Positions 10,420 through 50,180 of a stretch of 64,000 nucleotides of DNA are shown here, one piece after another. The notes under the pieces are model-generated. The model had not been told where the DNA came from. It made no database searches and saw only the letters and a list, made by a program, of their open reading frames with translations. This DNA comes from Anolis carolinensis (lineage: Eukaryota). How positions within the stretch are numbered: the stretch's first letter is position 1; each line of letters opens with the position of its first letter. The DNA lies in contig NW_026943818.1 of the NCBI RefSeq assembly GCF_035594765.1, forward strand, positions 34,283,559 to 34,347,558. The letters are read 5' to 3'. Position numbers and translations under genes: made by a program.

Positions 10420-11458
10420 GAAAGGGACCCCCAAAGGCCATCTAGATGATCTCATAAGGCCATCAAAAAACCATAGATAAGGAAAGCGACCCTCAAAGTC
10501 CATCTAGATGATCTCATAAGGCCATCAGAAGACCATAGATAAGTAAAGGAACCCTCAAAGGCCTTTTAGACAGTCTCATGGGACCATAGGTAAGGAAAAT
10601 GACCTCCAAAAGCCATCTAGATGGTCTCATAAGTCCGTAGCTAAGCAAAGAGACCTCCAAAGACCATCTAGATGGTCTCATAAGTCCGTAGCTAAGCAAA
10701 GAGACCTCCAAAGACCATCTAGATGGTCTCATGAGTCCGTAGCTAAGCAAAGAGACCTCCAAAGACCATCTAGACAATCTCATAAGTCCATAGCTAAGCA
10801 AAGAGACCTCCAAAGACCATCTGGATGGTCTCATAAGTCCGTAGCTAAGCAAAGAGACCTCCAAAGACCATCTAGATGGTCTCATGAGTCCGTAGCTAAG
10901 CAAAGAGACCTTCAAAGACCATCTAGATGGTCTCATAAGTCCGTAGCTAAGCAAAGAGACCTCCAAAGACCATCTAGATGGTCTCATGAGTCTGTAGCTA
11001 AGCAAAGAGACCTTCAAAGACCATCTAGATGGTCTCATAAGTCCATAGCTTAAAAAAGTGACCTCCAAAGACCATCTGGATGGTCTCATAAGTCCGTAAC
11101 TAAGCAAAGAGACCTCCAAAGACCATCTAGATGGTCTCATGAGTCCGTAGCTAAGCAAAGAGACCTTCAAAGACCATCTAGATGGTCTCATAAGTCCGTA
11201 GCTAAGCAAAGAGACCTTCAAAGACTATCTAGATGGTCTCATAAGTCCGTAGCTAAGCAAAGAGACTTTCAAAGACCATCTAGATGGTCTCATAAGTCCG
11301 TGCTAAGCAAAGAGACTTTCAAAGACCATCTAGATGGTCTCATAAGTCCGTAGCTAAGCAAAGAGACTTTCAAAGACTATCTAGATGGTCTCATAAGTCC
11401 GTAGCTAAGCACAGAGACTTTCAAAGACCATCTAGATGGTCTCATAAGTCCATAGCTT
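10420..11458. repeat. 51-bp palindrome-containing minisatellite (~20 copies), MBD3 intron 3
   Basis: unit agaccatctagatggtctcataagtccgtagctaagcaaagagacctccaa; 17-aa periodicity in the ORF track. Confidence 0.95.
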
Positions 11459-38074: not shown

Positions 38075-41290
<3,216 letters not shown>

Positions 41291-41438
41291 TAAAATATTT
41301 TTTGTGTTTTTCGTTAATTCTCGCAACTGTTGTTTTATGTCATTTGAAGCTGTTATCGATTCCGGTAAATTTCTCTCTATATATGTGCATTTCTCTCCAG
41401 CAATATTTGCAAGCCCTATGTATTTATGTTTATATCTA

Positions 41439-42938
41439 TCTATATATATAAAAGGGTAATGAAATTTCGGCCTAGGACATAACAACAAAACTACACATCC
41501 CAGAAACACTAAACTTGGCAGCACAACCCCTCATCCATGCCTCTACATTCATACAACAAAAAGAAAAGAAAAATAAAGTCCTAATTAGAGGGAGAGGAAT
41601 AATTGTTTTTATCCAATTGCTGCCAGTTAGAAGGCTAAGCTCCGTCAGGGGAAAACCTTTACCCTTTACCTTAACTACCACCAATACCTCAATACTTTAT
41701 TTCCCATACCACCATACTTCGCCACAGCAACGCGTGGCCGGGCACAGCTAGTATTTATATATAAAAGAGTAATGGAATCACGGCACCGGACAAAACAACT
41801 AAACTAAATGCCCCACAACCTCGAAAATTGAAAGCACAACCTCTCATCCACGCCTCTACGTTCATACAACAAAAAGAAAAGAAAAATAAAGTCCTAACCA
41901 CAGCAACACATGGCTGGGCACAGCTAGTATATTTATAAATGTAATGTGCATTTTTCCCATGGAGTAAACAACAAAACTGCTGAACCAAATCACACCAAAT
42001 TTGGTCACAAAAGACATAGTCATCCAAAATATGTCCTTCAATTAAAAAAACCTAGAAAAATAAAGTCCAAGTAACAGAAAACCCCAAATTGCTTATTGCG
42101 CATGCGCAGAGGCCCCCCGGGAATTGAAACAACTACATTACCCAGAGGACCTCATAGCTGTGCGTGGAGCCTAACGCCACTTTTAAAATACGTTGCCATG
42201 GTGGAACAGCCTTGTAGCTTCACAGCCAGGCTGCTTCCTAACCAAAGGGATCCTAAACACCAGACTACACCACAGCAATCTATATATATTTATAAATGTA
42301 ATGTGCATTTTTCCCCTGGAGTAAACAACAAAACCGCTGAACCAAATCACACCAAATTTGGTCACAAAAGACATAGTCATCCAAAATATGTCCTTCAATT
42401 AAAAAAACCTAGAAAAATAAAGTCCAAGTAACAGAAAACCCCAAATTGCTTATTGTGCATGCGCAGAGGACCCCCGGGAATTGAAACAACTACATTACCC
42501 AGAGGACCTCATAGCTGTGCGTGGAGCCTAACGCCGCTTTTAAAATACGTTGCCATGGTGGAACAGCCTTGCAGCTTCACAGCCAAGCTGCTTCCTAACC
42601 AAAGGGATCCTAAACACCAGACTACACCACAGCAATCTATATATATTTATAAATGTAATGTGCGTTTTTCCCCTGGAGTAAACAACAAAACCGCTGAACC
42701 AAATCACACCAAATTTGGTCACAAAAGACATAGTCACCCAAAATATGTCCTTCAATTAAAAAAACCCAGAAAAATAAAGTCCAAGTAACAGAAAAACCCA
42801 AATTGCTTACTGCGCATGCGCAGAGGACCCCCGGGAATTGAAACAACATTACCCAGCTTCACAGGCAGGCTGCTTCCTAACCAAAGGGATCCTAACCACC
42901 AGACTACACCACGGCAACGCATGGCCGGGCAGAGCTAG
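41439..42938 (+). mobile_element. cluster of non-autonomous Helitrons with a 357-bp internal tandem duplication
   Basis: 5' TCTATATATATAAAAG; 3' hairpin+CTAG ends at 41751, 41927 and 42938; 357-bp period (42096/42453). Confidence 0.75.
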
Positions 42939-42943
42939 TAAAC

Positions 42944-42974
<31 letters not shown>

Positions 42975-43073
42975 GCACTCAAAGGACCAAATGAAAGGCA
43001 TGAGCCCTGTGTGTTGTGCCCTCGCTCTTCTGGAGAGTAAGTAAGTGACCACTTCTCTCTCTCTGCCCCACAG

Positions 43074-43270
43074 ACCTGCCCACTCCGGTCAAAAACGAGG
43101 ACCCCGAAGCCAAGCGGGAGCGCCTCTACCGCCTGACCCAGTCCTACGTGGAGATGAACCACCGCCTGCAGAAGGCCTGCAGCCTCCTGAAGGAGAAGTG
43201 CGAGGAGCTCAAACTGGCCGGGGCCACCTTGGAGCAAGGCATCCTGGAGATGAAGCAGAGGGCCTTGTGA
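43074..43270 (+). CDS. C19orf25: C19orf25 last coding exon (DLPTPVKNEDPEAKRERLYRLTQSYVEMNHRLQKACSLLKEKCEELKLAGATLEQGILEMKQRAL*); protein 111 aa
   Basis: acceptor ccacag|ac; manual translation gives the conserved coiled-coil; TGA at 43268-43270. Confidence 0.9.
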
Positions 43271-43597
43271 GGCACACGACTCGTTCTTCCTTTCGCGGGG
43301 GGCTGGGGAGGGGGCCGGGGAGGGGGAATCAAAGACTCTCCCCTTGCCACGAAAACCCAGAAGCATCCTCTTCCTTTCTGCAACAAAAACAAAAAGACTC
43401 GCCGGCCTGCAACGTGATCGATTCCAGCATGCCTCTGCCACCGCCGCCGCTTCTTCTTCTTCCTCGACGCCGCTGCCATCTTGTGTTTTAGGTCCCGTGA
43501 ATGTGTGCCGACCGTAGGCCGCTAGGTCCCGCCACTCCCTTCCGCCGTCTGCTTTCCGATCTCGTGCGCTTTGTATAAGTCGGGGTAGAACTGGGGG

Positions 43598-44455
43598 GTG
43601 GGGGCTCGTCCGGGATTCTTCGTTCAGTCGTCGTATGTGTTTCGTTCCGGAGAACTGGACTCTGAGGGCCAAGAGGTGGGAAAAGGAGACGGGTATAGCC
43701 ATTTGGGTGGGTGGGTAGAGTGTCCCGTCGACGGGAGGCTTTGCAATGACCTCTCTCCCTCCGCCCCGTTATGGGGGCTCGTCCGGGATTCTTTCTTCAG
43801 TCATCGTATGTGTTTCATTCCAGAAAACTGGACTCTGAGTTTCGTTCCAGAAAACTGGACTCTGAGGTAGGGAAAGGAGAGGGGTATAGCCATTTGGGTG
43901 GGTGGGTAGAGTGTCCCATTGACAGGAGGCTTTGCAATGACCTCTACACCCCATTAGGTTGGGGGCTCGTCCGGGATTCTTTGTTCAGTCATTGTATGTG
44001 TTTCGTTCCAGAAAACTGGACTCTGAGGTGGGGAAAGGAGAAGGGTATAGCCATTTGGGTGGGTGGGTAGAGTGTCCCATTGACAGGAGGCTTTGCAATG
44101 ACTTCTACACCCCATTAGGTTGGGGGCTCGTCCGGGATGCTTTCTTCAGTCATTGTATGTGTTTCATTCCGGAGAACTGGACTCTGAGGGCCAAGAGGTG
44201 GGAAACGGAGACAGGTATAGCCATTTGGGTGGGTGGGTAGAGTGTCCCGTCGACAGGAGGCTTTGCAATGACCTCTACACCCCATTAGGCTGGGGGCTCG
44301 TCCGGGATTCTTTGTTCAGTCATTGTATGTGTTTCGTTCCGGAGAACTGGACTCTGAGGGCCAAGAGGTGGGAAACGGAGACGGGTATAGCCATTTGGGT
44401 GGGTGGGTAGAGTGTCCCGTCGACAGGAATGACCTCTCTCCCTCCGCCCCGTTAC
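43598..44455 (+). repeat. five ~160-190-bp tandem units; the first four end in copies of the TIR ORF start context and the last runs into the ORF
   Basis: gggggctcgtccggg at ~43600, 43773, 43961, 44122, 44292; aatgacctct(ctccctccgccccgtta) at the unit ends. Confidence 0.9.
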
Positions 44456-44857
44456 GATTTCTCCCTCTGGTACTCCCCGGAGGACGAGAACATCGCCGCC
44501 GCCGTGGCCGGGATCCTCCGGGAGCACGGCTTCCGCGGATACGTGGAGCACCAAGACGCCGTGGCCGGGAGGCCGGTCCTCGCCTCGGCCGACGAGGGCA
44601 TCCGCTCCAGCCGGGTGGCCCTCCTCCTCCTGAGCCCCCGCTCCTTGGGCGACCGCTGGTGCCGGCGGGTGGCCGAGCTGACCCTGCTCCACGCCGTCCA
44701 CCAAGAGGAAGCCAAGGTCGTCCCGGTGTACGTGGGCGTCCGGCCGGAGGAGGCCCCGCCGTCCCTGAGGCTCTTAACTGGACTGGAATACGGCCAGCGG
44801 TTTTTCAAGCAGAGGCTCCTCCGATGCCTGGAAGCGAGTTGTAAAGGACGCCGCTAA
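44429..44857 (+). CDS. intronless stand-alone TIR-domain protein (TIRAP/MAL-like), 142 aa
   Basis: TIR motifs YDFSLWYSPED, GFRGYVEHQDAVAG (BB loop), SRVALLLLSPRSLGDRWC, KVVPVYVGV..PPSLR; GC3-rich coding-like composition; ATTAAA at 44931. Confidence 0.8.
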   Translation: MTSLPPPRYDFSLWYSPEDENIAAAVAGILREHGFRGYVEHQDAVAGRPVLASADEGIRSSRVALLLLSPRSLGDRWCRRVAELTLLHAVHQEEAKVVPVYVGVRPEEAPPSLRLLTGLEYGQRFFKQRLLRCLEASCKGRR

Positions 44858-44979
44858 GATCGGATCCGCTTGGTCTCTGTGGGTTTGGTGAATGTCTGGA
44901 GGCTGGTTGTTTTAATTTAAGGAAACCCTTATTAAAGAGCAGGTTTTGGACAACGCTCGGTTGTGGGTGGAATCCTTCC

Positions 44980-46075
44980 TTTTAGGACTAAAGGGCGGGG
45001 CTAGGGGTGGGGGCGGGTCCTCTTCCGAAGAGCATGAGACAGGGCTGAGCCTCTATACTTCTCCTGAGAGGCCTTTTAGGACTAAAAGGCGGGGCTAGGG
45101 GTGGGGGCGGGTCCTCTTCCGAAGAGCATGAGACAGGGCTGAGCCTCTATACTTCTCCTGAGAGGCCTTTTAGGACTAAAAGGCGGGGCTAGGGGTGGGG
45201 GCGGGGCCTCTTCCGAAGAGCATGAGACAGGGCTGAGCCTCTATACTTCTCCTGAGAGGCCTTTTAGGACTAAAAGGCGGGGCTAGGGGTGGGGGCGGGG
45301 CCTCCTTCCAAGAGCCTGAGACAGGGCTGAGCCTCTATACTTCTGAGAGGCCTTTTAGGACTAAAAGGCGGGGCTAGGGGTGGGGGCGGGGCCTCTTCCC
45401 AAGAGCCTGAGACAGGGCTGAGCCTCTATATTTCTCCCGAGAGGCCTTTTAGGACTAAAGGGCGGGGCTAGGGAAGGGGGCGGGGCCTCCTTCCAAGAGC
45501 CTGAGACAGGGCTGAGCCTCTATATTTCTCCCGAGAGGCCTTTTAGGACGAAAGGGTGGGGCTGGGGGTGGGGGCGGGGCCTCCTTCCAAGAGCCTGAGA
45601 CAGGGCTGAGCCTCTATATTTCTCCTGAGAGGCCTTTTAGGACTAAAGGGCGGGGCTGGGGTGGGGGCGGGGCCTCTTCCCAAGAGCCTGAGACAGGGCT
45701 GAGCCTCTATACTTCTCCTGAGAGGCCTTTTAGGACTAAAGGGCGGGGCTAGGGAAGGGGGCGGGGCCTCCTTCCAAGAGCATGAGATAGGGCTGAGCCT
45801 CTATATTTCTCCTGAGAGGCCTTTTAGGACTAAAAGGCGGGGCTAGAGGTGGGGCCGGGGCCTCTTTCCAAGAGCACGAGACAGGGCTGAGAATCTATAC
45901 CTCCCCTGAGGCACTTGTTATAACATGGGGGTGGGGTATAGAAGCCCCGCCCCCTCCTCTAGCCCCGCCCCCTGTGTCCTGGCAGGAACTACAGGACAGG
46001 GATAGATGCTCAGCCCTATCTCAGAGCTCGTAACTCCGCCCATCCCAGTCCTGGCCGCCAATTTGTGGCGGCCCG
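44980..46075. repeat. 94-bp GC-box minisatellite (~10 units) plus unique flank; inverted relative of 2530-3300
   Basis: unit ttttaggactaaagggcggggctaggggtgggggcggggcctcttcccaagagcctgagacagggctgagcctctatacttctcctgagaggcc; period 45041/45135. Confidence 0.92.
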
Positions 46076-46359
46076 TTTACGTTGGATAAGCGAGACTCTA
46101 CTGTATTTATTTATTTAATACATTTATAATCCCGCCCTTCTCAGAGCGGCTTACAAATTAAATTTACATACAATATCATATTATTAGCAATAAAATTACC
46201 ATATTGTACTATATCTATATATTGTAATATTATTAGTAATATTGCATGTAATGTATAATTAATATTATTATATTGCATTATTAGTATTATATTGTATTAC
46301 AAAATAATATTATTAATATATGTATATACAATATATTATAATATTATAGTAAATTATAT

Positions 46360-46840
46360 TGTCTCACTTATCCAACGTAAACAGGCCAGCAGAACGTTGG
46401 ATAAGCGAATATGTTGGATAATAAAGAGAGATCAAGGAAAAGTCTATTAAACATAAAATTATGTTATGATTTTACAAATTAAGCACAAAAACATTGTTAT
46501 ACCACAAATTTGACAGAAAAAGTAGTTCAATACACAGTAATGCTATGTAGTAATTACTGTATTTACGAATTTAGCACCAAAATATCACGATGTATTGAAA
46601 ACATTGACTACAAAAATTATTGGATAATCCAGAACATTGGATTAGCGAGTGTTGGATAAATGAGACTTTACTGGAATAAGATCAGAGTGAAATAATAAAT
46701 GTATTAATAATAATAAAAATAAAATAATAATAATAATAGAGTAAAATAAATGTAATAGCAACAATAATAGAAAACAAAAATGCGTTGGATAATCCAGAAT
46801 GTTGGATAAGCAAGTGTTGGATAAGTGAGACTCTACTGTA
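46360..46840. mobile_element. rearranged Tc1/mariner MITE copies; further partial copies at 50440-50712 and 58675-59182
   Basis: gtctcacttatccaac...gttggataagtgagactctactgta with internal AT-rich insertion. Confidence 0.7.
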
Positions 46841-46869
46841 TTGTAATATTATTAGTAATATGACATGTA

Positions 46870-46900
<31 letters not shown>

Positions 46901-47499
46901 GCATTATTAGTATTATATTGTATTACAAAATCATATTAATATAGTTATATACAATATATTATAATATTATAGTAAATTATATTGTATGTATATATATATA
47001 AACATAAAATCATAAAACATATAATACATTAAAACATACTCAAGCAATAGCTACGAGTCAGGCTCAGTGAACAGCCCAGCAGGGAGGAAGCAGCCAGGCT
47101 TCGAAGCTGCAAGGCTATTCAATGCTAATCAAGGTGATTTATTGCAATATTAACACTTGCCTCCAACAGACAAGAGTCCTACCCAGAGATATATAAACCC
47201 CACTTGCCTGGTTTCCAACAGGCCTCACAACCTCTGAGGATGCCTGCCATAGTTGTGGGCGAAACGTCAGGAGAGAGTGCTTCTGGAGACATGGAAAATT
47301 CGCAGCAACCCTGTGACTGCTTTCGACAGTATGTTGCCAAATTGTGGAATTAGGAATGGTGGGAGTTGGAGTCCAAAATACCTGGAGGGCCCAAGTTTGC
47401 CCAGGCCTTTGTTTACATATTGCTATTTCGATCAGGCGTTCGTCTTGGACAGCCTCCACATTGTTTACATGTTGTGATTTCGATCAGGCGTTCGCCTAG

Positions 47500-47975
47500 G
47501 ACAGGCTCCACATCTTGGGCCTGTCTCAAAAAAAAATGGCGTCGAGGACCTCACTTCGGCCTTTGTTTCCTTTGGCTGGGTTTTGCCTTTGAGCAAAATG
47601 GTGGCTTAGAGGCACTTCCGCCAGGCGCTCTGTGTTTCTTTAATGCGCATGCGCATCGCCACTCCCGGCTTTGTATATAGACCAGGTGGGATGTTGGTAT
47701 GTGTTCCAGCGCATGCGCGATTATTCTTTTCCCGCCTCCTCGCCCTTTCAGAGAGGAGGGTTAGGTTTGCGTATGAGTGCGCATGCGCATTATCTAATCT
47801 CCCTCTTCACTGCCCTTAGTGGCAATGGCGACAAGCAACGGCGAAGGTGTTAACATCCACTGCAGCGCATGCGCAGTCCCCGCGCTGACTCCTTTCTCCT
47901 GCCCATAGCCAGCATGGCGGCGGCCTGAGGTAAAGGGAAGCGACCCGCTGAGGCGGAGAAAGCGGCGGTTGAGGG
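47500..47975 (+). promoter_or_regulatory. REXO1 CpG-island promoter/5'UTR with four NRF1 palindromes and YY1/ETS motifs
   Basis: gcgcatgcgc at ~47645, 47709, 47779, 47865; aaaatggcg ~47533; catggcggc ~47913; cacttccg ~47613. Confidence 0.7.
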
Positions 47976-48120
47976 ATGCTCCGCTCCAGCGGTTTCTTCC
48001 GCGGCGTCGAGTGCCCCTTCGGGCCGGCCTGCGGGAGGCCTTACTGCCACTTTCGGCACCCGGCGGGCCCGCCTCAAGCCGCCGCCCCGCCAACGGCGAC
48101 TCTCCCGCGGCGCCGCCGAG
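47976..48120 (+). CDS. REXO1: REXO1 coding exon 1 (MLRSSGFFRGVECPFGPACGRPYCHFRH...)
   Basis: matches REXO1 N-terminal MLRSxGFFR and C..RPYCHFRH; phase-1 donor G|GTAACG. Confidence 0.93.
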
Positions 48121-48139
48121 GTAACGGGGCCTATTCGGG

Positions 48140-50180
48140 GCAGTGCGCATGCGCAGAGGCGCTTCCAGGTTGGAGAAGGGGGGTGGGCCTTGCCTTTAGC
48201 CAAAGGCACTCTGTACGTGCTCAGAGGTGCTTTGGAGAGGCCTCTGGTGAGCCAAGGCACTCTGTACATGCTCAGAAGCACCTCCAGGGTGGAGAAGTTG
48301 GGAAAATAGACCTTGTTTTGAGTGAAGGGTACTCTGCACATGCTCAGGAGCCCTTCCAGGGTGGAGAGGAAGGGAAAATAGACCTTGTTTTGAGTGACAG
48401 GCACTCTGCACATGCTCAGAAGCACCTCCAGGGTGGAGAGGAAGGGAAAATAGGCCTTGTTTTCAGTGAAAGGCACTCTGCACATGCTCAGAAGCACCTC
48501 CAGGGTGGAGAGGAAGGGAAAATAGGCCTTGTTTTCAGTGAAAGGCACTCTGCACATGCTCAGAAGCACCTCCAGGGTGGAAAGGAAGGGGAAATAGACC
48601 TTGTTTTGAGTGACAGGCACTCTGCACATGCTCAGAAGCATCTCCAGGGTGGAGAGGAAGGGAAAATAGACCTTGTTTTCAGTGAAAGGCACTCTGTACA
48701 TGCTCAGAAGCACCTCCAGAGTGGAGAGGAAGGGGAAATAGACCTTGTTTTGAGTGACAGGCACTCTGCACATGCTCAGAAGCACCTCCAGGGTGGAGAG
48801 GAAGGGAAAATAGACCTTGTTTTCAGTGAAAGGCACTCTGCACATGCTCAGAAGCACCTCCAGGGTGGAAAGGAAGGGGAAATAGACCTTGTTTTGAGTG
48901 ACAGGCACTCTGCACATGCTCAGAAGCATCTCCAGGGTGGAGAGGAAGGGAAAATAGACCTTGTTTTCAGTGAAAGGCACTCTGTACATGCTCAGAAGCA
49001 CCTCCAGAGTGGAGAGGAAGGGGAAATAGACCTTGTTTTGAGTGACAGGCACTCTGCACATGCTCAGAAGCACCTCCAGGGTGGAGAGGAAGGGAAAATA
49101 GACCTTGTTTTCAGTGAAAGGCACTCTGCACATGCTCAGAAGCACCTCCAGGGTGGAAAGGAAGGGGAAATAGACCTTGTTTTGAGTGACAGGCACTCTG
49201 CACATGCTCAGAAGCACCTCCAGGGTGGAGAGGAAGGGAAAATAGACCTTGTTTTCAGTGAAAGGCACTCTGCACATGCTCAGAAGCACCTCCAGGGTGG
49301 AGAGGAAGGGAAAATAGACCTTGTTTTGAGTGACAGGCACTCTGCACATGCTCAGAAGCATCTCCAGGGTGGAGAGGAAGGGAAAATAGGCCTTGTTTTC
49401 AGTGAAAGGCACTCTGCACATGCTCAGAAGCACCTCCAGGGTGGAGAGGAAGGGAAAATAGACCTTGTTTTGAGTGACAGGCATTCTGCACATGCTCAGA
49501 AGCACCTCCAGGGTGGAGAGGAAGGGAAAATAGACCTTGTTTTGAGTGACAGGCACTCTGCACATGCTCAGAAGCATCTCCAGGGTGGAGAGGAAGGGAA
49601 AATAGGCCTTGTTTTCAGTGAAAGGCACTCTGCACATGCTCAGAAGCACCTCCAGGGTGGAAAGGAAGGGGAAATAGACCTTGTTTTGAGTGACAGGCAC
49701 TCTGCACATGCTCAGAAGCACCTCCAGGGTGGAGAGGAAGGGAAAATAGACCTTGTTTTCAGTGAAAGGCACTCTGTACATGCTCAGAAGCACCTCCAGA
49801 GTGGAGAGGAAGGGGAAATAGATCTTGTTTTGAGTGACAGGCACTCTGCACATGCTCAGAAGCACCTCCAGGGTGGAGAGGAAGGGAAAATAGGCCTTGT
49901 TTTCAGTGAAAGGCACTCTGCACATGCTCAGAAGCACCTCCAGGGTGGAGAGGAAGGGAAAATAGACCTTGTTTTCAGTGAAAGGCACTCTGCACATGCT
50001 CAGAAGCACCTCCAGGGTGGAGAGGAAGGGAAAATAGACCTTGTTTTCAGTGACAGGCACTCTGCACATGCTCAGAAGCACCTCCAGGGTGGAAAGGTTG
50101 GGAAGATTGTATGATTCTATGATTCTAGATGAGCCTTGTTTACAGTGAAAGGCACTCTGCACATGCTCAGAGGTACTTTG
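48140..50180. repeat. 72-bp minisatellite (~27 copies) at the start of REXO1 intron 1; degenerate copies at 50220-50290 and 50755-51200
   Basis: unit aggcactctgcacatgctcagaagcacctccagggtggagaggaagggaaaatagaccttgttttcagtgaa; 24-aa periodicity. Confidence 0.97.

Follow-up and report, generated by a model that had tools for sequence, protein, structure and literature searches.

We examined a 64,000-nucleotide stretch of the Anolis carolinensis genome (RefSeq assembly GCF_035594765.1, contig NW_026943818.1, positions 34,283,559 to 34,347,558 of the forward strand; hereafter the window), in which the gene C19orf25, coding for a UPF0449 protein, is followed on the same strand by an open reading frame (ORF) for a TIR domain. 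A preliminary description, made from the letters alone, had singled out this ORF as an intact, intronless and GC-rich frame of 142 amino acids with TIR motifs. This was borne out: the frame at 44429-44857 (+) starts with ATG, lies in a single exon without interruption and has a GC content of 0.68-0.73 (its coordinates include the stop codon), and the motifs quoted for it are present. This ORF is the Anolis orthologue within an ancient, unnamed family of TIR-only proteins in vertebrates.

An in-frame stop at 44408-44410, 21 nucleotides (nt) 5′ of the TIR ATG, means that the ORF cannot be extended in the 5′ direction without a splice. Openness alone proves nothing here, as GC-rich DNA yields open frames cheaply, and three ORFs of 118-173 amino acids overlap the TIR ORF in other frames. 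That it is not a chance ORF follows from the Pfam check proposed in the preliminary description, which returned both TIR_2 (PF13676; E 2.5e-15, 57.5 bits against a cut-off of 28) and TIR (PF01582; E 5.4e-8, 33.3 bits against a cut-off of 21.3). TIR is the only Pfam domain in the protein, and there is no death domain. An AlphaFold model built from a 16-sequence family alignment had a mean predicted local distance difference test score (pLDDT) of 87.3 and a predicted template modelling score (pTM) of 0.82. In this model, strands at residues 9-14, 37-40, 61-68 and 96-101 alternate with helices, a complete TIR fold spans residues 9-139, and the sole uncertain part is the BB loop (residues 41-48). 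Foldseek found 162 matches to the model in PDB at E<=0.001, and the best 50 of the 162 were all TIR domains. The protein begins MTS..., only 8 residues ahead of strand A, and is without an N-terminal targeting region.

Table 1. Features at the C19orf25-TIR locus, in positions of the window
Feature	Position	Strand	Details
C19orf25/UPF0449 start-codon exon	40990..41156	+	ATG 41018, residues 1-46, phase-1 donor AAG/GT
C19orf25 intron	41157..43073	+	GT..AG, 1917 nt skipped, holds high-copy expressed repeat
C19orf25 second coding part	43074..43270	+	stop 43268-43270
Transcribed spacer between ORFs	43271..44428	+	1158 nt, 13 ATGs, no poly(A) hexamer
Tandem array, 170-191-bp units	43673..44428	+	ends exactly at TIR ATG
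TIR-only ORF	44429..44857	+	Pfam, orthologues, AlphaFold model, Foldseek, RNA contigs 44399-44951/44955
Shared poly(A) signal and likely cleavage zone	44931..44955	+	ATTAAA 44931-44936; hexamer, contig ends

The C19orf25 exons of the window were searched separately, and the intron-less UPF0449 ORF of a lungfish transcript, described below, was used where a whole protein was needed. With tblastn the lungfish protein matched 41018-41155, and the second coding part was 93-97% identical to exon 2 of C19orf25 in Varanus, Podarcis and Phrynocephalus; the stop placed in this way agrees with position 43270 given in the preliminary description. RNA contig pieces from four sequencing runs cover 40990-41154. 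The contigs of two runs carry 56-151 extra letters before 40990, indicating that at least one further upstream C19orf25 exon is joined at that position. Within the intron, a repeat at 41364-42068 shows many loose ends, reached in one run an RNA contig depth of about 166,000 and is presumably a high-copy expressed interspersed element.

Most of the spacer is a tandem array, for which Tandem Repeats Finder reported periods of 191 (1.9 copies) and 170 (3.4 copies). Its units copy the TIR start codon and first codons, with ATGs at 43746, 43937, 44098 and 44268 that open upstream ORFs of 30, 6, 6 and 6 amino acids, respectively; the first 26 nt of the TIR ORF recur in the copy at 43746, and the real TIR start differs from the array copies by a 9-nt deletion just 5′ of the ATG. 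It follows from these copies that the array was born by duplication of the 5′ flank and first codons of the TIR gene. The only AATAAA or ATTAAA on the forward strand between 43000 and 45100 is the ATTAAA at 44931, 74 nt past the TIR stop, exactly as the preliminary description had noted by eye, and no common variant hexamer was found in the spacer at 43271-44428 either. At 55% GC, only about 0.3 AATAAA/ATTAAA hexamers are expected in 1158 nt by our estimate, and a spacer without one is therefore weak evidence by itself.

About 25 nt after the poly(A) site, a second tandem array begins (44978-45910; 94-bp unit, 10 copies, 93% match). Farther downstream, a tandem array of 72 bp x 25.7 lies at 48254-50104, with long ORFs at 47976-50114 (+) and 47850-50162 (-); a Pfam IF3_C match within it looks spurious, having no significant single stretch. 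In the 19 kb 3′ of the TIR ORF (44858-64000), which are rich in tandem repeats, PIP5K1C was not found, nor could REXO1, which the preliminary description had taken to bound the interval behind C19orf25, be confirmed. Scanned against Rfam at E<=0.1, the stretch 40500-46500 gave nothing, and hence no known internal ribosome entry site or RNA family.

A TIR-only family behind UPF0449

Four relatives of the window protein were detected by a word-indexed protein search. An exhaustive HMMER search with the alignment of these four yielded 11 cluster representatives at E<=1e-30, beyond which the scores fell off sharply. Members were found in lizards (Podarcis, Varanus and Phrynocephalus), turtles (Gopherus and Chelydra), birds (Podargus and Hirundo), frogs (Xenopus laevis, X. 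tropicalis and Leptobrachium) and a lamprey (Lampetra fluviatilis). The family proteins are about 140 amino acids long and consist of the TIR domain only; their start, 'MT..P.RYDFSLWY', is conserved, and the orthologues begin at the equivalent Met. A weaker relative is the amphioxus TIR-only protein P0015, which scored 93 bits with a five-sequence profile that excluded it. In the family tree, members cluster by taxon, and the window protein is sister to that of Podarcis (support 98/97).

The preliminary description had called the gene previously unannotated. For Anolis this holds, as its TIR protein is absent from a collection of 15 billion proteins; for the family it needs correction, since orthologues have been predicted in a handful of species under names that are empty or wrong, including 'hypothetical protein' (Xenopus and Hirundo), 'MYD88 protein, partial' (Podargus) and 'TIR domain-containing protein'. 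A literature search found no report of the TIR gene and none linking C19orf25 or UPF0449 to a TIR domain. The named matches include no mammal; mammalian loci and human sequence were outside the comparison and the ORF is mostly unannotated even where it is present, so that absence from mammals is not shown by this.

Position was conserved together with sequence. Nine vertebrate loci or transcripts were compared: the window, the lungfish transcript, Podarcis, Varanus, Phrynocephalus, Catharus, Hirundo, Xenopus laevis and Lampetra fluviatilis. In each of them the TIR ORF shares its strand with UPF0449, occupies one exon and lies 197-1158 nt past the UPF0449 stop. The Catharus sequence is a genomic contig (L004) of the thrush Catharus gracilirostris (PMC12068868). 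Podarcis, Varanus and Phrynocephalus share the order C19orf25-TIR-PIP5K1C, with PIP5K1C 2.1-2.8 kb behind the TIR gene, and MRPL54 lies upstream of C19orf25 in Podarcis and Varanus. The order in Hirundo is PCSK4-REEP6-C19orf25-TIR-trypsin-APC2, and that in the lamprey is MAP1B-like, UPF0449, TIR, SRP19 domain and APC. The deposited lamprey gene model (contig L007, 10001-18071) fuses the TIR exon with the SRP19 domain, which places SRP19 directly downstream of TIR and ahead of the APC gene. In amphioxus, no UPF0449 was found within 10 kb upstream of the TIR-only gene. The teleost Scleropages has the order REEP-UPF0449-APC2, with no TIR ORF in the intervening 8 kb.

Selection on the ORF was assessed by pairwise Nei-Gojobori ratios of nonsynonymous to synonymous substitution (dN/dS), with bootstrap intervals for the corresponding ratio of proportions (pN/pS). 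Values of 0.32-0.44 were obtained among the window, Podarcis and Varanus, with all pN/pS intervals below 1. The dN/dS check proposed in the preliminary description thus came out in favour of constraint for the squamates; a songbird pair and one Phrynocephalus copy are considered further below. Squamate spacers could not be aligned with each other, and conservation of the DNA starts at the TIR ATG. The strongest argument for its probable translation is that the ORF has stayed intact and recognisable as TIR all the way from lamprey to birds. Purifying selection likewise indicates translation somewhere, without telling which RNA is used.

Transcription from C19orf25 into the TIR reading frame

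Transcription was analysed in four small lizard sequencing runs that contained 63-82% of the sampled words of 43000-45000, with contigs placed on 40800-45000. The splice joint 41154->43072 (GT..AG when the cut is shifted by +2) was present in one contig in each of the four runs, which come from four studies. Intron bins 41223-41363 and 42774-43055 had zero depth, which identifies the runs as RNA. In all four, C19orf25 RNA passes its stop and reaches 43662; three runs show this in a single spliced contig, and the fourth in two contigs that overlap. The de Bruijn assemblies break near 43662, where the tandem array starts. Further pieces cover 43703-43911, 43984-44072, 44229-44354 and 44325-44412 of the spacer, and the final contig, which starts at 44399, one k-mer ahead of the array end, covers the entire TIR ORF. 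Its 3′ ends in three runs (44951, 44953 and 44955) lie 15-19 nt after ATTAAA. The depths of the C19orf25 and TIR contigs were nearly equal in each run (326/456, 76/58, 19.4/17 and 43-52/40), and every spacer bin was covered in the deepest run. Transcription in the lizard is thus shown, at contig level, to be continuous from C19orf25 to a common poly(A) site. At 43514 and 44446, all four RNA runs have A where the assembly has G. The latter change affects the third base of TIR codon 6 (Pro), is synonymous and is the only difference between RNA and assembly inside the ORF.

A second line of evidence came from a lungfish contig (L009, 1416 nt), assembled from a Sequence Read Archive run used for African lungfish (Protopterus) transcriptomes (PMC5994560). 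It contains an intron-less UPF0449 ORF at 30-347, a 531-nt spacer, a TIR ORF at 879-1325 and an AATAAA 10 nt from its end. At every genomic locus, UPF0449 has an intron after about residue 46, and this intron is absent from L009; the contig looks like a complete two-ORF mRNA. The transcript shared with C19orf25 that the preliminary description had raised as a possibility is therefore upheld as a common transcribed unit and poly(A) site at contig level in the lizard, and as one contig with both ORFs in the lungfish. Annotation pipelines have also joined the two genes: NCBI names the Podarcis TIR protein 'C19orf25 homolog isoform X1', and in a Varanus model derived from Ensembl the TIR exon is joined to exon 2 of C19orf25, which is read there in a different frame. 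A poly(A) hexamer is missing from seven of the nine UPF0449-TIR spacers and occurs in the other two, both of them AT-rich; a shared transcript would fit this pattern, which is not significant at the base composition of these spacers.

How the TIR ORF might be reached from the upstream gene was considered next to these data. Stop-codon read-through into the TIR ORF was rejected, because in-frame stops intervene in all but one species. In Hirundo rustica (contig L006, 9797-10001), the UPF0449 stop and the TIR ORF share one frame, the 204 nt between them are free of further stops, and read-through would yield a fusion in that species only. A fusion could also arise by alternative splicing, if the phase-1 donor that ends C19orf25 exon 1 were joined to the AG at 44425-44426, giving a conserved, basic 46-residue UPF0449 N-terminus followed by TIR, an architecture like that of TIRAP or TRAM. 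The frames would fit both in the window (first exon base 44427) and in Xenopus (9999), and compatible AGs with good pyrimidine tracts occur in Podarcis, Phrynocephalus and Hirundo. We nevertheless consider such a fusion very unlikely: no joint between exon 1 and TIR occurred in the contigs of the four runs, one in three AGs fits the frame by chance, the lamprey has no compatible acceptor, the Hirundo site is missing from Catharus and the pyrimidine tract in the window is weak (0.44). The conserved Met and short N-terminus also favour a start at the ATG.

Relation to known TIR proteins

In the preliminary description the protein had been termed TIRAP-like. With the single window sequence, TIRAP was indeed the best match among solved structures (E 1.8e-6), followed by TICAM2 (E 4.5e-5) and, weakly, MyD88. 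This likeness is not specific, as TICAM2 is close and family profiles favour other proteins. Profile A2 (16 sequences) placed MyD88 first (62 bits, E 3.7e-16), ahead of Hydra TRR-2 (52 bits), TIRAP (50) and TICAM2 (47); profile A4 (17 sequences) ranked them similarly; and profile A1, made from sauropsids only, gave oyster TIR-STING 35, TICAM2 33 and TIRAP 32.5 bits. Nor do Foldseek scores separate the adaptors: the probability was 1.00 for TIRAP, TRAM and MyD88, with TM-scores of 0.75 for TRAM and 0.73 each for the MAL filament and MyD88. Among the best 150 library matches past the family, the checked entries were invertebrate TIR proteins or a Toll-like receptor (TLR) fragment and included no vertebrate TIRAP, TICAM or MyD88. 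Candidates of TIRAP length among these 150 proved to be invertebrate proteins or a TLR1/2 fragment. A feature search of ESM Atlas listed generic bacterial TIR clusters only and was uninformative. Judged by profile scores against solved structures rather than by a tree with the named adaptors, the family appears to be a separate branch of animal TIR domains, for which 'TIRAP-like' would be no more accurate a label than 'MyD88-like' or 'TRAM-like'.

The protein is without the hallmark additions of each of the known adaptors. With TIRAP/MAL, it shares an adaptor-type animal TIR (about 22% identity), box 1, 'DPWC' and C-terminal 'PP.LR' motifs that are similar, and a residue other than Glu at the position that is catalytic in NAD-cleaving TIRs (NADases). 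It differs from TIRAP/MAL in lacking the N-terminal segment that binds phosphatidylinositol 4,5-bisphosphate (PIP2), in having Ala in place of the BB-loop Pro (P125 of human MAL) and in its locus, which is deeply conserved behind UPF0449, whereas the TIRAP gene lies elsewhere in the genome. That the ORF is an ordinary TIRAP/MAL orthologue or a TIRAP retrocopy might be argued from the single-sequence match together with the lack of introns. We regard this as scarcely credible, given a UPF0449-adjacent locus that is constant from lamprey to birds, profiles that put MyD88 above TIRAP, the lack of TIRAP among the checked entries of the best 150 and the missing lipid-binding region and BB-loop Pro; the poly(A) tail and target-site duplication typical of retrocopies are missing as well. 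The assignment as a stand-alone TIR-only ORF, neither ordinary TIRAP nor the last coding exon of another protein, therefore stands.

TICAM2/TRAM resembles the window protein in being a short adaptor with an intron-less TIR part that is co-transcribed with an upstream gene, and TRAM gives the best TM-score of the model. In contrast to TRAM, the window protein has neither a myristoylation motif nor the N-terminal targeting region of about 70 residues, its sequence is no more similar to TICAM2 than to TIRAP or MyD88, and its upstream partner is UPF0449 instead of TMED7. A TMED7-TICAM2 read-through unit has been listed, and human 5q22.1-q23.1 holds the group APC, SRP19, REEP5, TMED7 and TICAM2 (PMC10379344). 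The neighbours of the TIR-only family (APC/APC2, REEP5/6-type genes and SRP19) match relatives in this group. TICAM2 is reported in no group outside mammals and the elephant shark (PMC6043800). The TIR-only family could thus be a duplication twin of TICAM2; this is a lead, and sequence scores speak neither for nor against it.

MyD88 is the top solved-structure match of the family profile; the window protein is half as long, has no death or intermediate domain and lies at a different locus. The nearest identifiable library proteins after the family are invertebrate TIR-only or multi-TIR proteins (amphioxus, sea urchin and brachiopod), many of which differ in being long and multi-domain. The amphioxus protein P0015 has the motifs 'RYDF.MWY' and 'P..R.L.G..F..F' in common with the family. 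As an arrangement, the locus recalls the vertebrate bicistronic genes SNURF-SNRPN and MOCS2, which also have two conserved ORFs on one polyadenylated RNA, kept over long evolutionary time. It departs from them in that the UPF0449-TIR spacer is long and variable in sequence, translation of the second ORF is putative and the UPF0449 and TIR products are without a known functional link.

Two sites bear on the function of the protein. The BB loop (box 2) reads EHQDxVAG, with Ala at the site of the Pro of signalling TIR domains. TLR4, MyD88 and MAL carry this Pro, and its mutation blocks signalling. The second site is the residue four positions after the conserved Trp, which is the catalytic Glu in NAD-cleaving TIRs (TLR2, plant and SARM1-type TIRs carry Glu there). 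Assigned by sequence alignment instead of structural superposition, this residue is Val or Ile in every vertebrate family member (V81 in the window protein) and Lys in both invertebrate rows of the alignment. Lacking the aligned Glu, the product is predicted to be non-enzymatic. Bacterial and SARM1 TIR structures do occur in the Foldseek list with scores similar to those of adaptors, and the feature search lists bacterial TIR clusters, both of which would fit an NAD-cleaving enzyme of SARM1 or bacterial type. Such an enzyme is highly improbable, considering that Glu never occurs at the aligned position in vertebrate members and that, by sequence, NADase TIRs score lowest of all the listed matches.

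A probable distal reading frame of the C19orf25 unit and its significance

The explanation we favour, with a probability of about 0.7, is that the ORF belongs to an ancient vertebrate TIR-only gene, encodes a non-enzymatic TIR adaptor or decoy and is expressed from the distal end of the C19orf25 unit. At the level of RNA-seq contigs, the lizard RNA begins with the C19orf25 exons, to which a further upstream exon joins at 40990, is spliced once in the coding region, crosses the 1.16-kb spacer and the TIR ORF and is polyadenylated about 20 nt after the ATTAAA at 44931. Candidate routes by which ribosomes might gain the second ORF are reinitiation, an internal entry site and a minor transcript starting in the spacer; two songbirds have a spacer of about 200 nt that holds no ATG, so that reinitiation would be allowed there. 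The TIR product would work via TIR-TIR contacts and may modulate signalling by Toll-like and interleukin-1 (IL-1) receptors. A decoy or brake on TLR/IL-1R signalling would be likelier than an activating bridge, because the protein has no effector or membrane-targeting part and its BB loop is atypical.

A number of observations weigh against this explanation, and the first group concerns the transcript. No single lizard contig spans both ORFs, the breaks falling in the 170-bp tandem array, and contigs are unable to prove one RNA molecule. In three of the four runs, the bin 44043-44183 is without a contig, which could reflect differences in repeat copy number or a real gap with a start site downstream. 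The 13 spacer ATGs found in Anolis are matched by 13 in Xenopus, which is bad for simple reinitiation. The empty bin and the ATGs, which would seldom let a ribosome scanning from upstream arrive at the TIR AUG, would suit a separate gene with its own promoter, in which a short monocistronic mRNA starts in the spacer, at the last array units, and C19orf25 RNA reads through and shares the poly(A) site. An array that duplicates the 5′ flank and start codon, as promoter-proximal DNA might, also fits this idea. Two songbirds (Catharus L004, 1340-1413; Hirundo L006, 9925-10000) resemble each other more closely in the final 60-75 nt ahead of the TIR ATG than in the coding sequence. This stretch may be a regulatory element, two close species being too few to tell, and the great similarity of its last 60 nt would be in keeping with a promoter. 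On the other side, only one of the four runs gives the TIR contig a greater depth than the C19orf25 contig, all spacer bins are covered in the deepest run, the lungfish contig joins both ORFs and the bird spacer leaves only about 200 nt. A separate promoter is accordingly a serious alternative, if one we think doubtful.

The second group concerns the ORF itself. The window protein lies on a long branch (0.5, versus 0.2 for Podarcis) and departs from the family at conserved sites (C16S, P76R and W84L). One Phrynocephalus copy shifts frame, and a X. laevis homeologue (P0017) looks degraded, as part of its BB-loop region is deleted and it lacks a precomputed Pfam hit. Two close songbirds gave a dN/dS of 1.26 (0.6-3.3) at a dS of 0.07, which at such low divergence is uninformative to mildly worrying. 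In the Phrynocephalus forsythii contig (L003), the frame change lies at 10513-10519 and the deposited protein ends early; the cause is an error in the assembly or decay of the copy.

The long terminal branch, the changes at conserved sites and the decay elsewhere, together with four decoy AUGs supplied by the tandem array upstream of the TIR ATG, raise the question whether the family is real and the Anolis ORF is an untranslated relic drifting inside a 3′ untranslated region (UTR). We judge this unlikely. All 142 codons are intact and the AlphaFold model is confident; dN/dS is 0.44 against Podarcis and 0.35 against Varanus; and the one difference between RNA and assembly in the ORF (44446 G>A) is synonymous. 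Compared with Varanus, dN and dS are both higher for the window than for Podarcis, so that the long branch points to a faster lineage and not to clear relaxation.

Beyond the favoured explanation, that of a distal ORF in the C19orf25 unit, we tentatively consider a stronger form, in which UPF0449 and TIR have been a true two-cistron gene since before the split of lampreys and jawed vertebrates. One mRNA would then encode two proteins that act together, and the TIR product would be an additional adaptor, possibly the whole-genome-duplication twin of TICAM2/TRAM. A complex prediction for lungfish UPF0449 and its TIR protein gave a score of 0.00, which is evidence neither way.

The gene is not unique to Anolis; it represents a vertebrate family that has been overlooked and whose two-ORF arrangement is remarkably constant. 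Reviews of TLR signalling list five TIR adaptors and describe birds, reptiles and amphibians as lacking TRAM (PMC6043800). If our favoured explanation is true, these animals have another TIR-only protein that was overlooked or misnamed in annotations, and models of TLR and IL-1 signalling in chicken, Xenopus and reptiles could change. Should the two-cistron form also be true, vertebrates other than mammals would possess a TIR adaptor in addition to the five listed, one that escaped notice because gene callers go no further than the first ORF. The UPF0449-TIR arrangement, kept from lamprey to birds, is a rare candidate for a deeply conserved vertebrate two-ORF transcript and provides a first functional lead for the uncharacterised C19orf25. 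It also illustrates that conserved ORFs can hide within annotated 3′-UTR regions.

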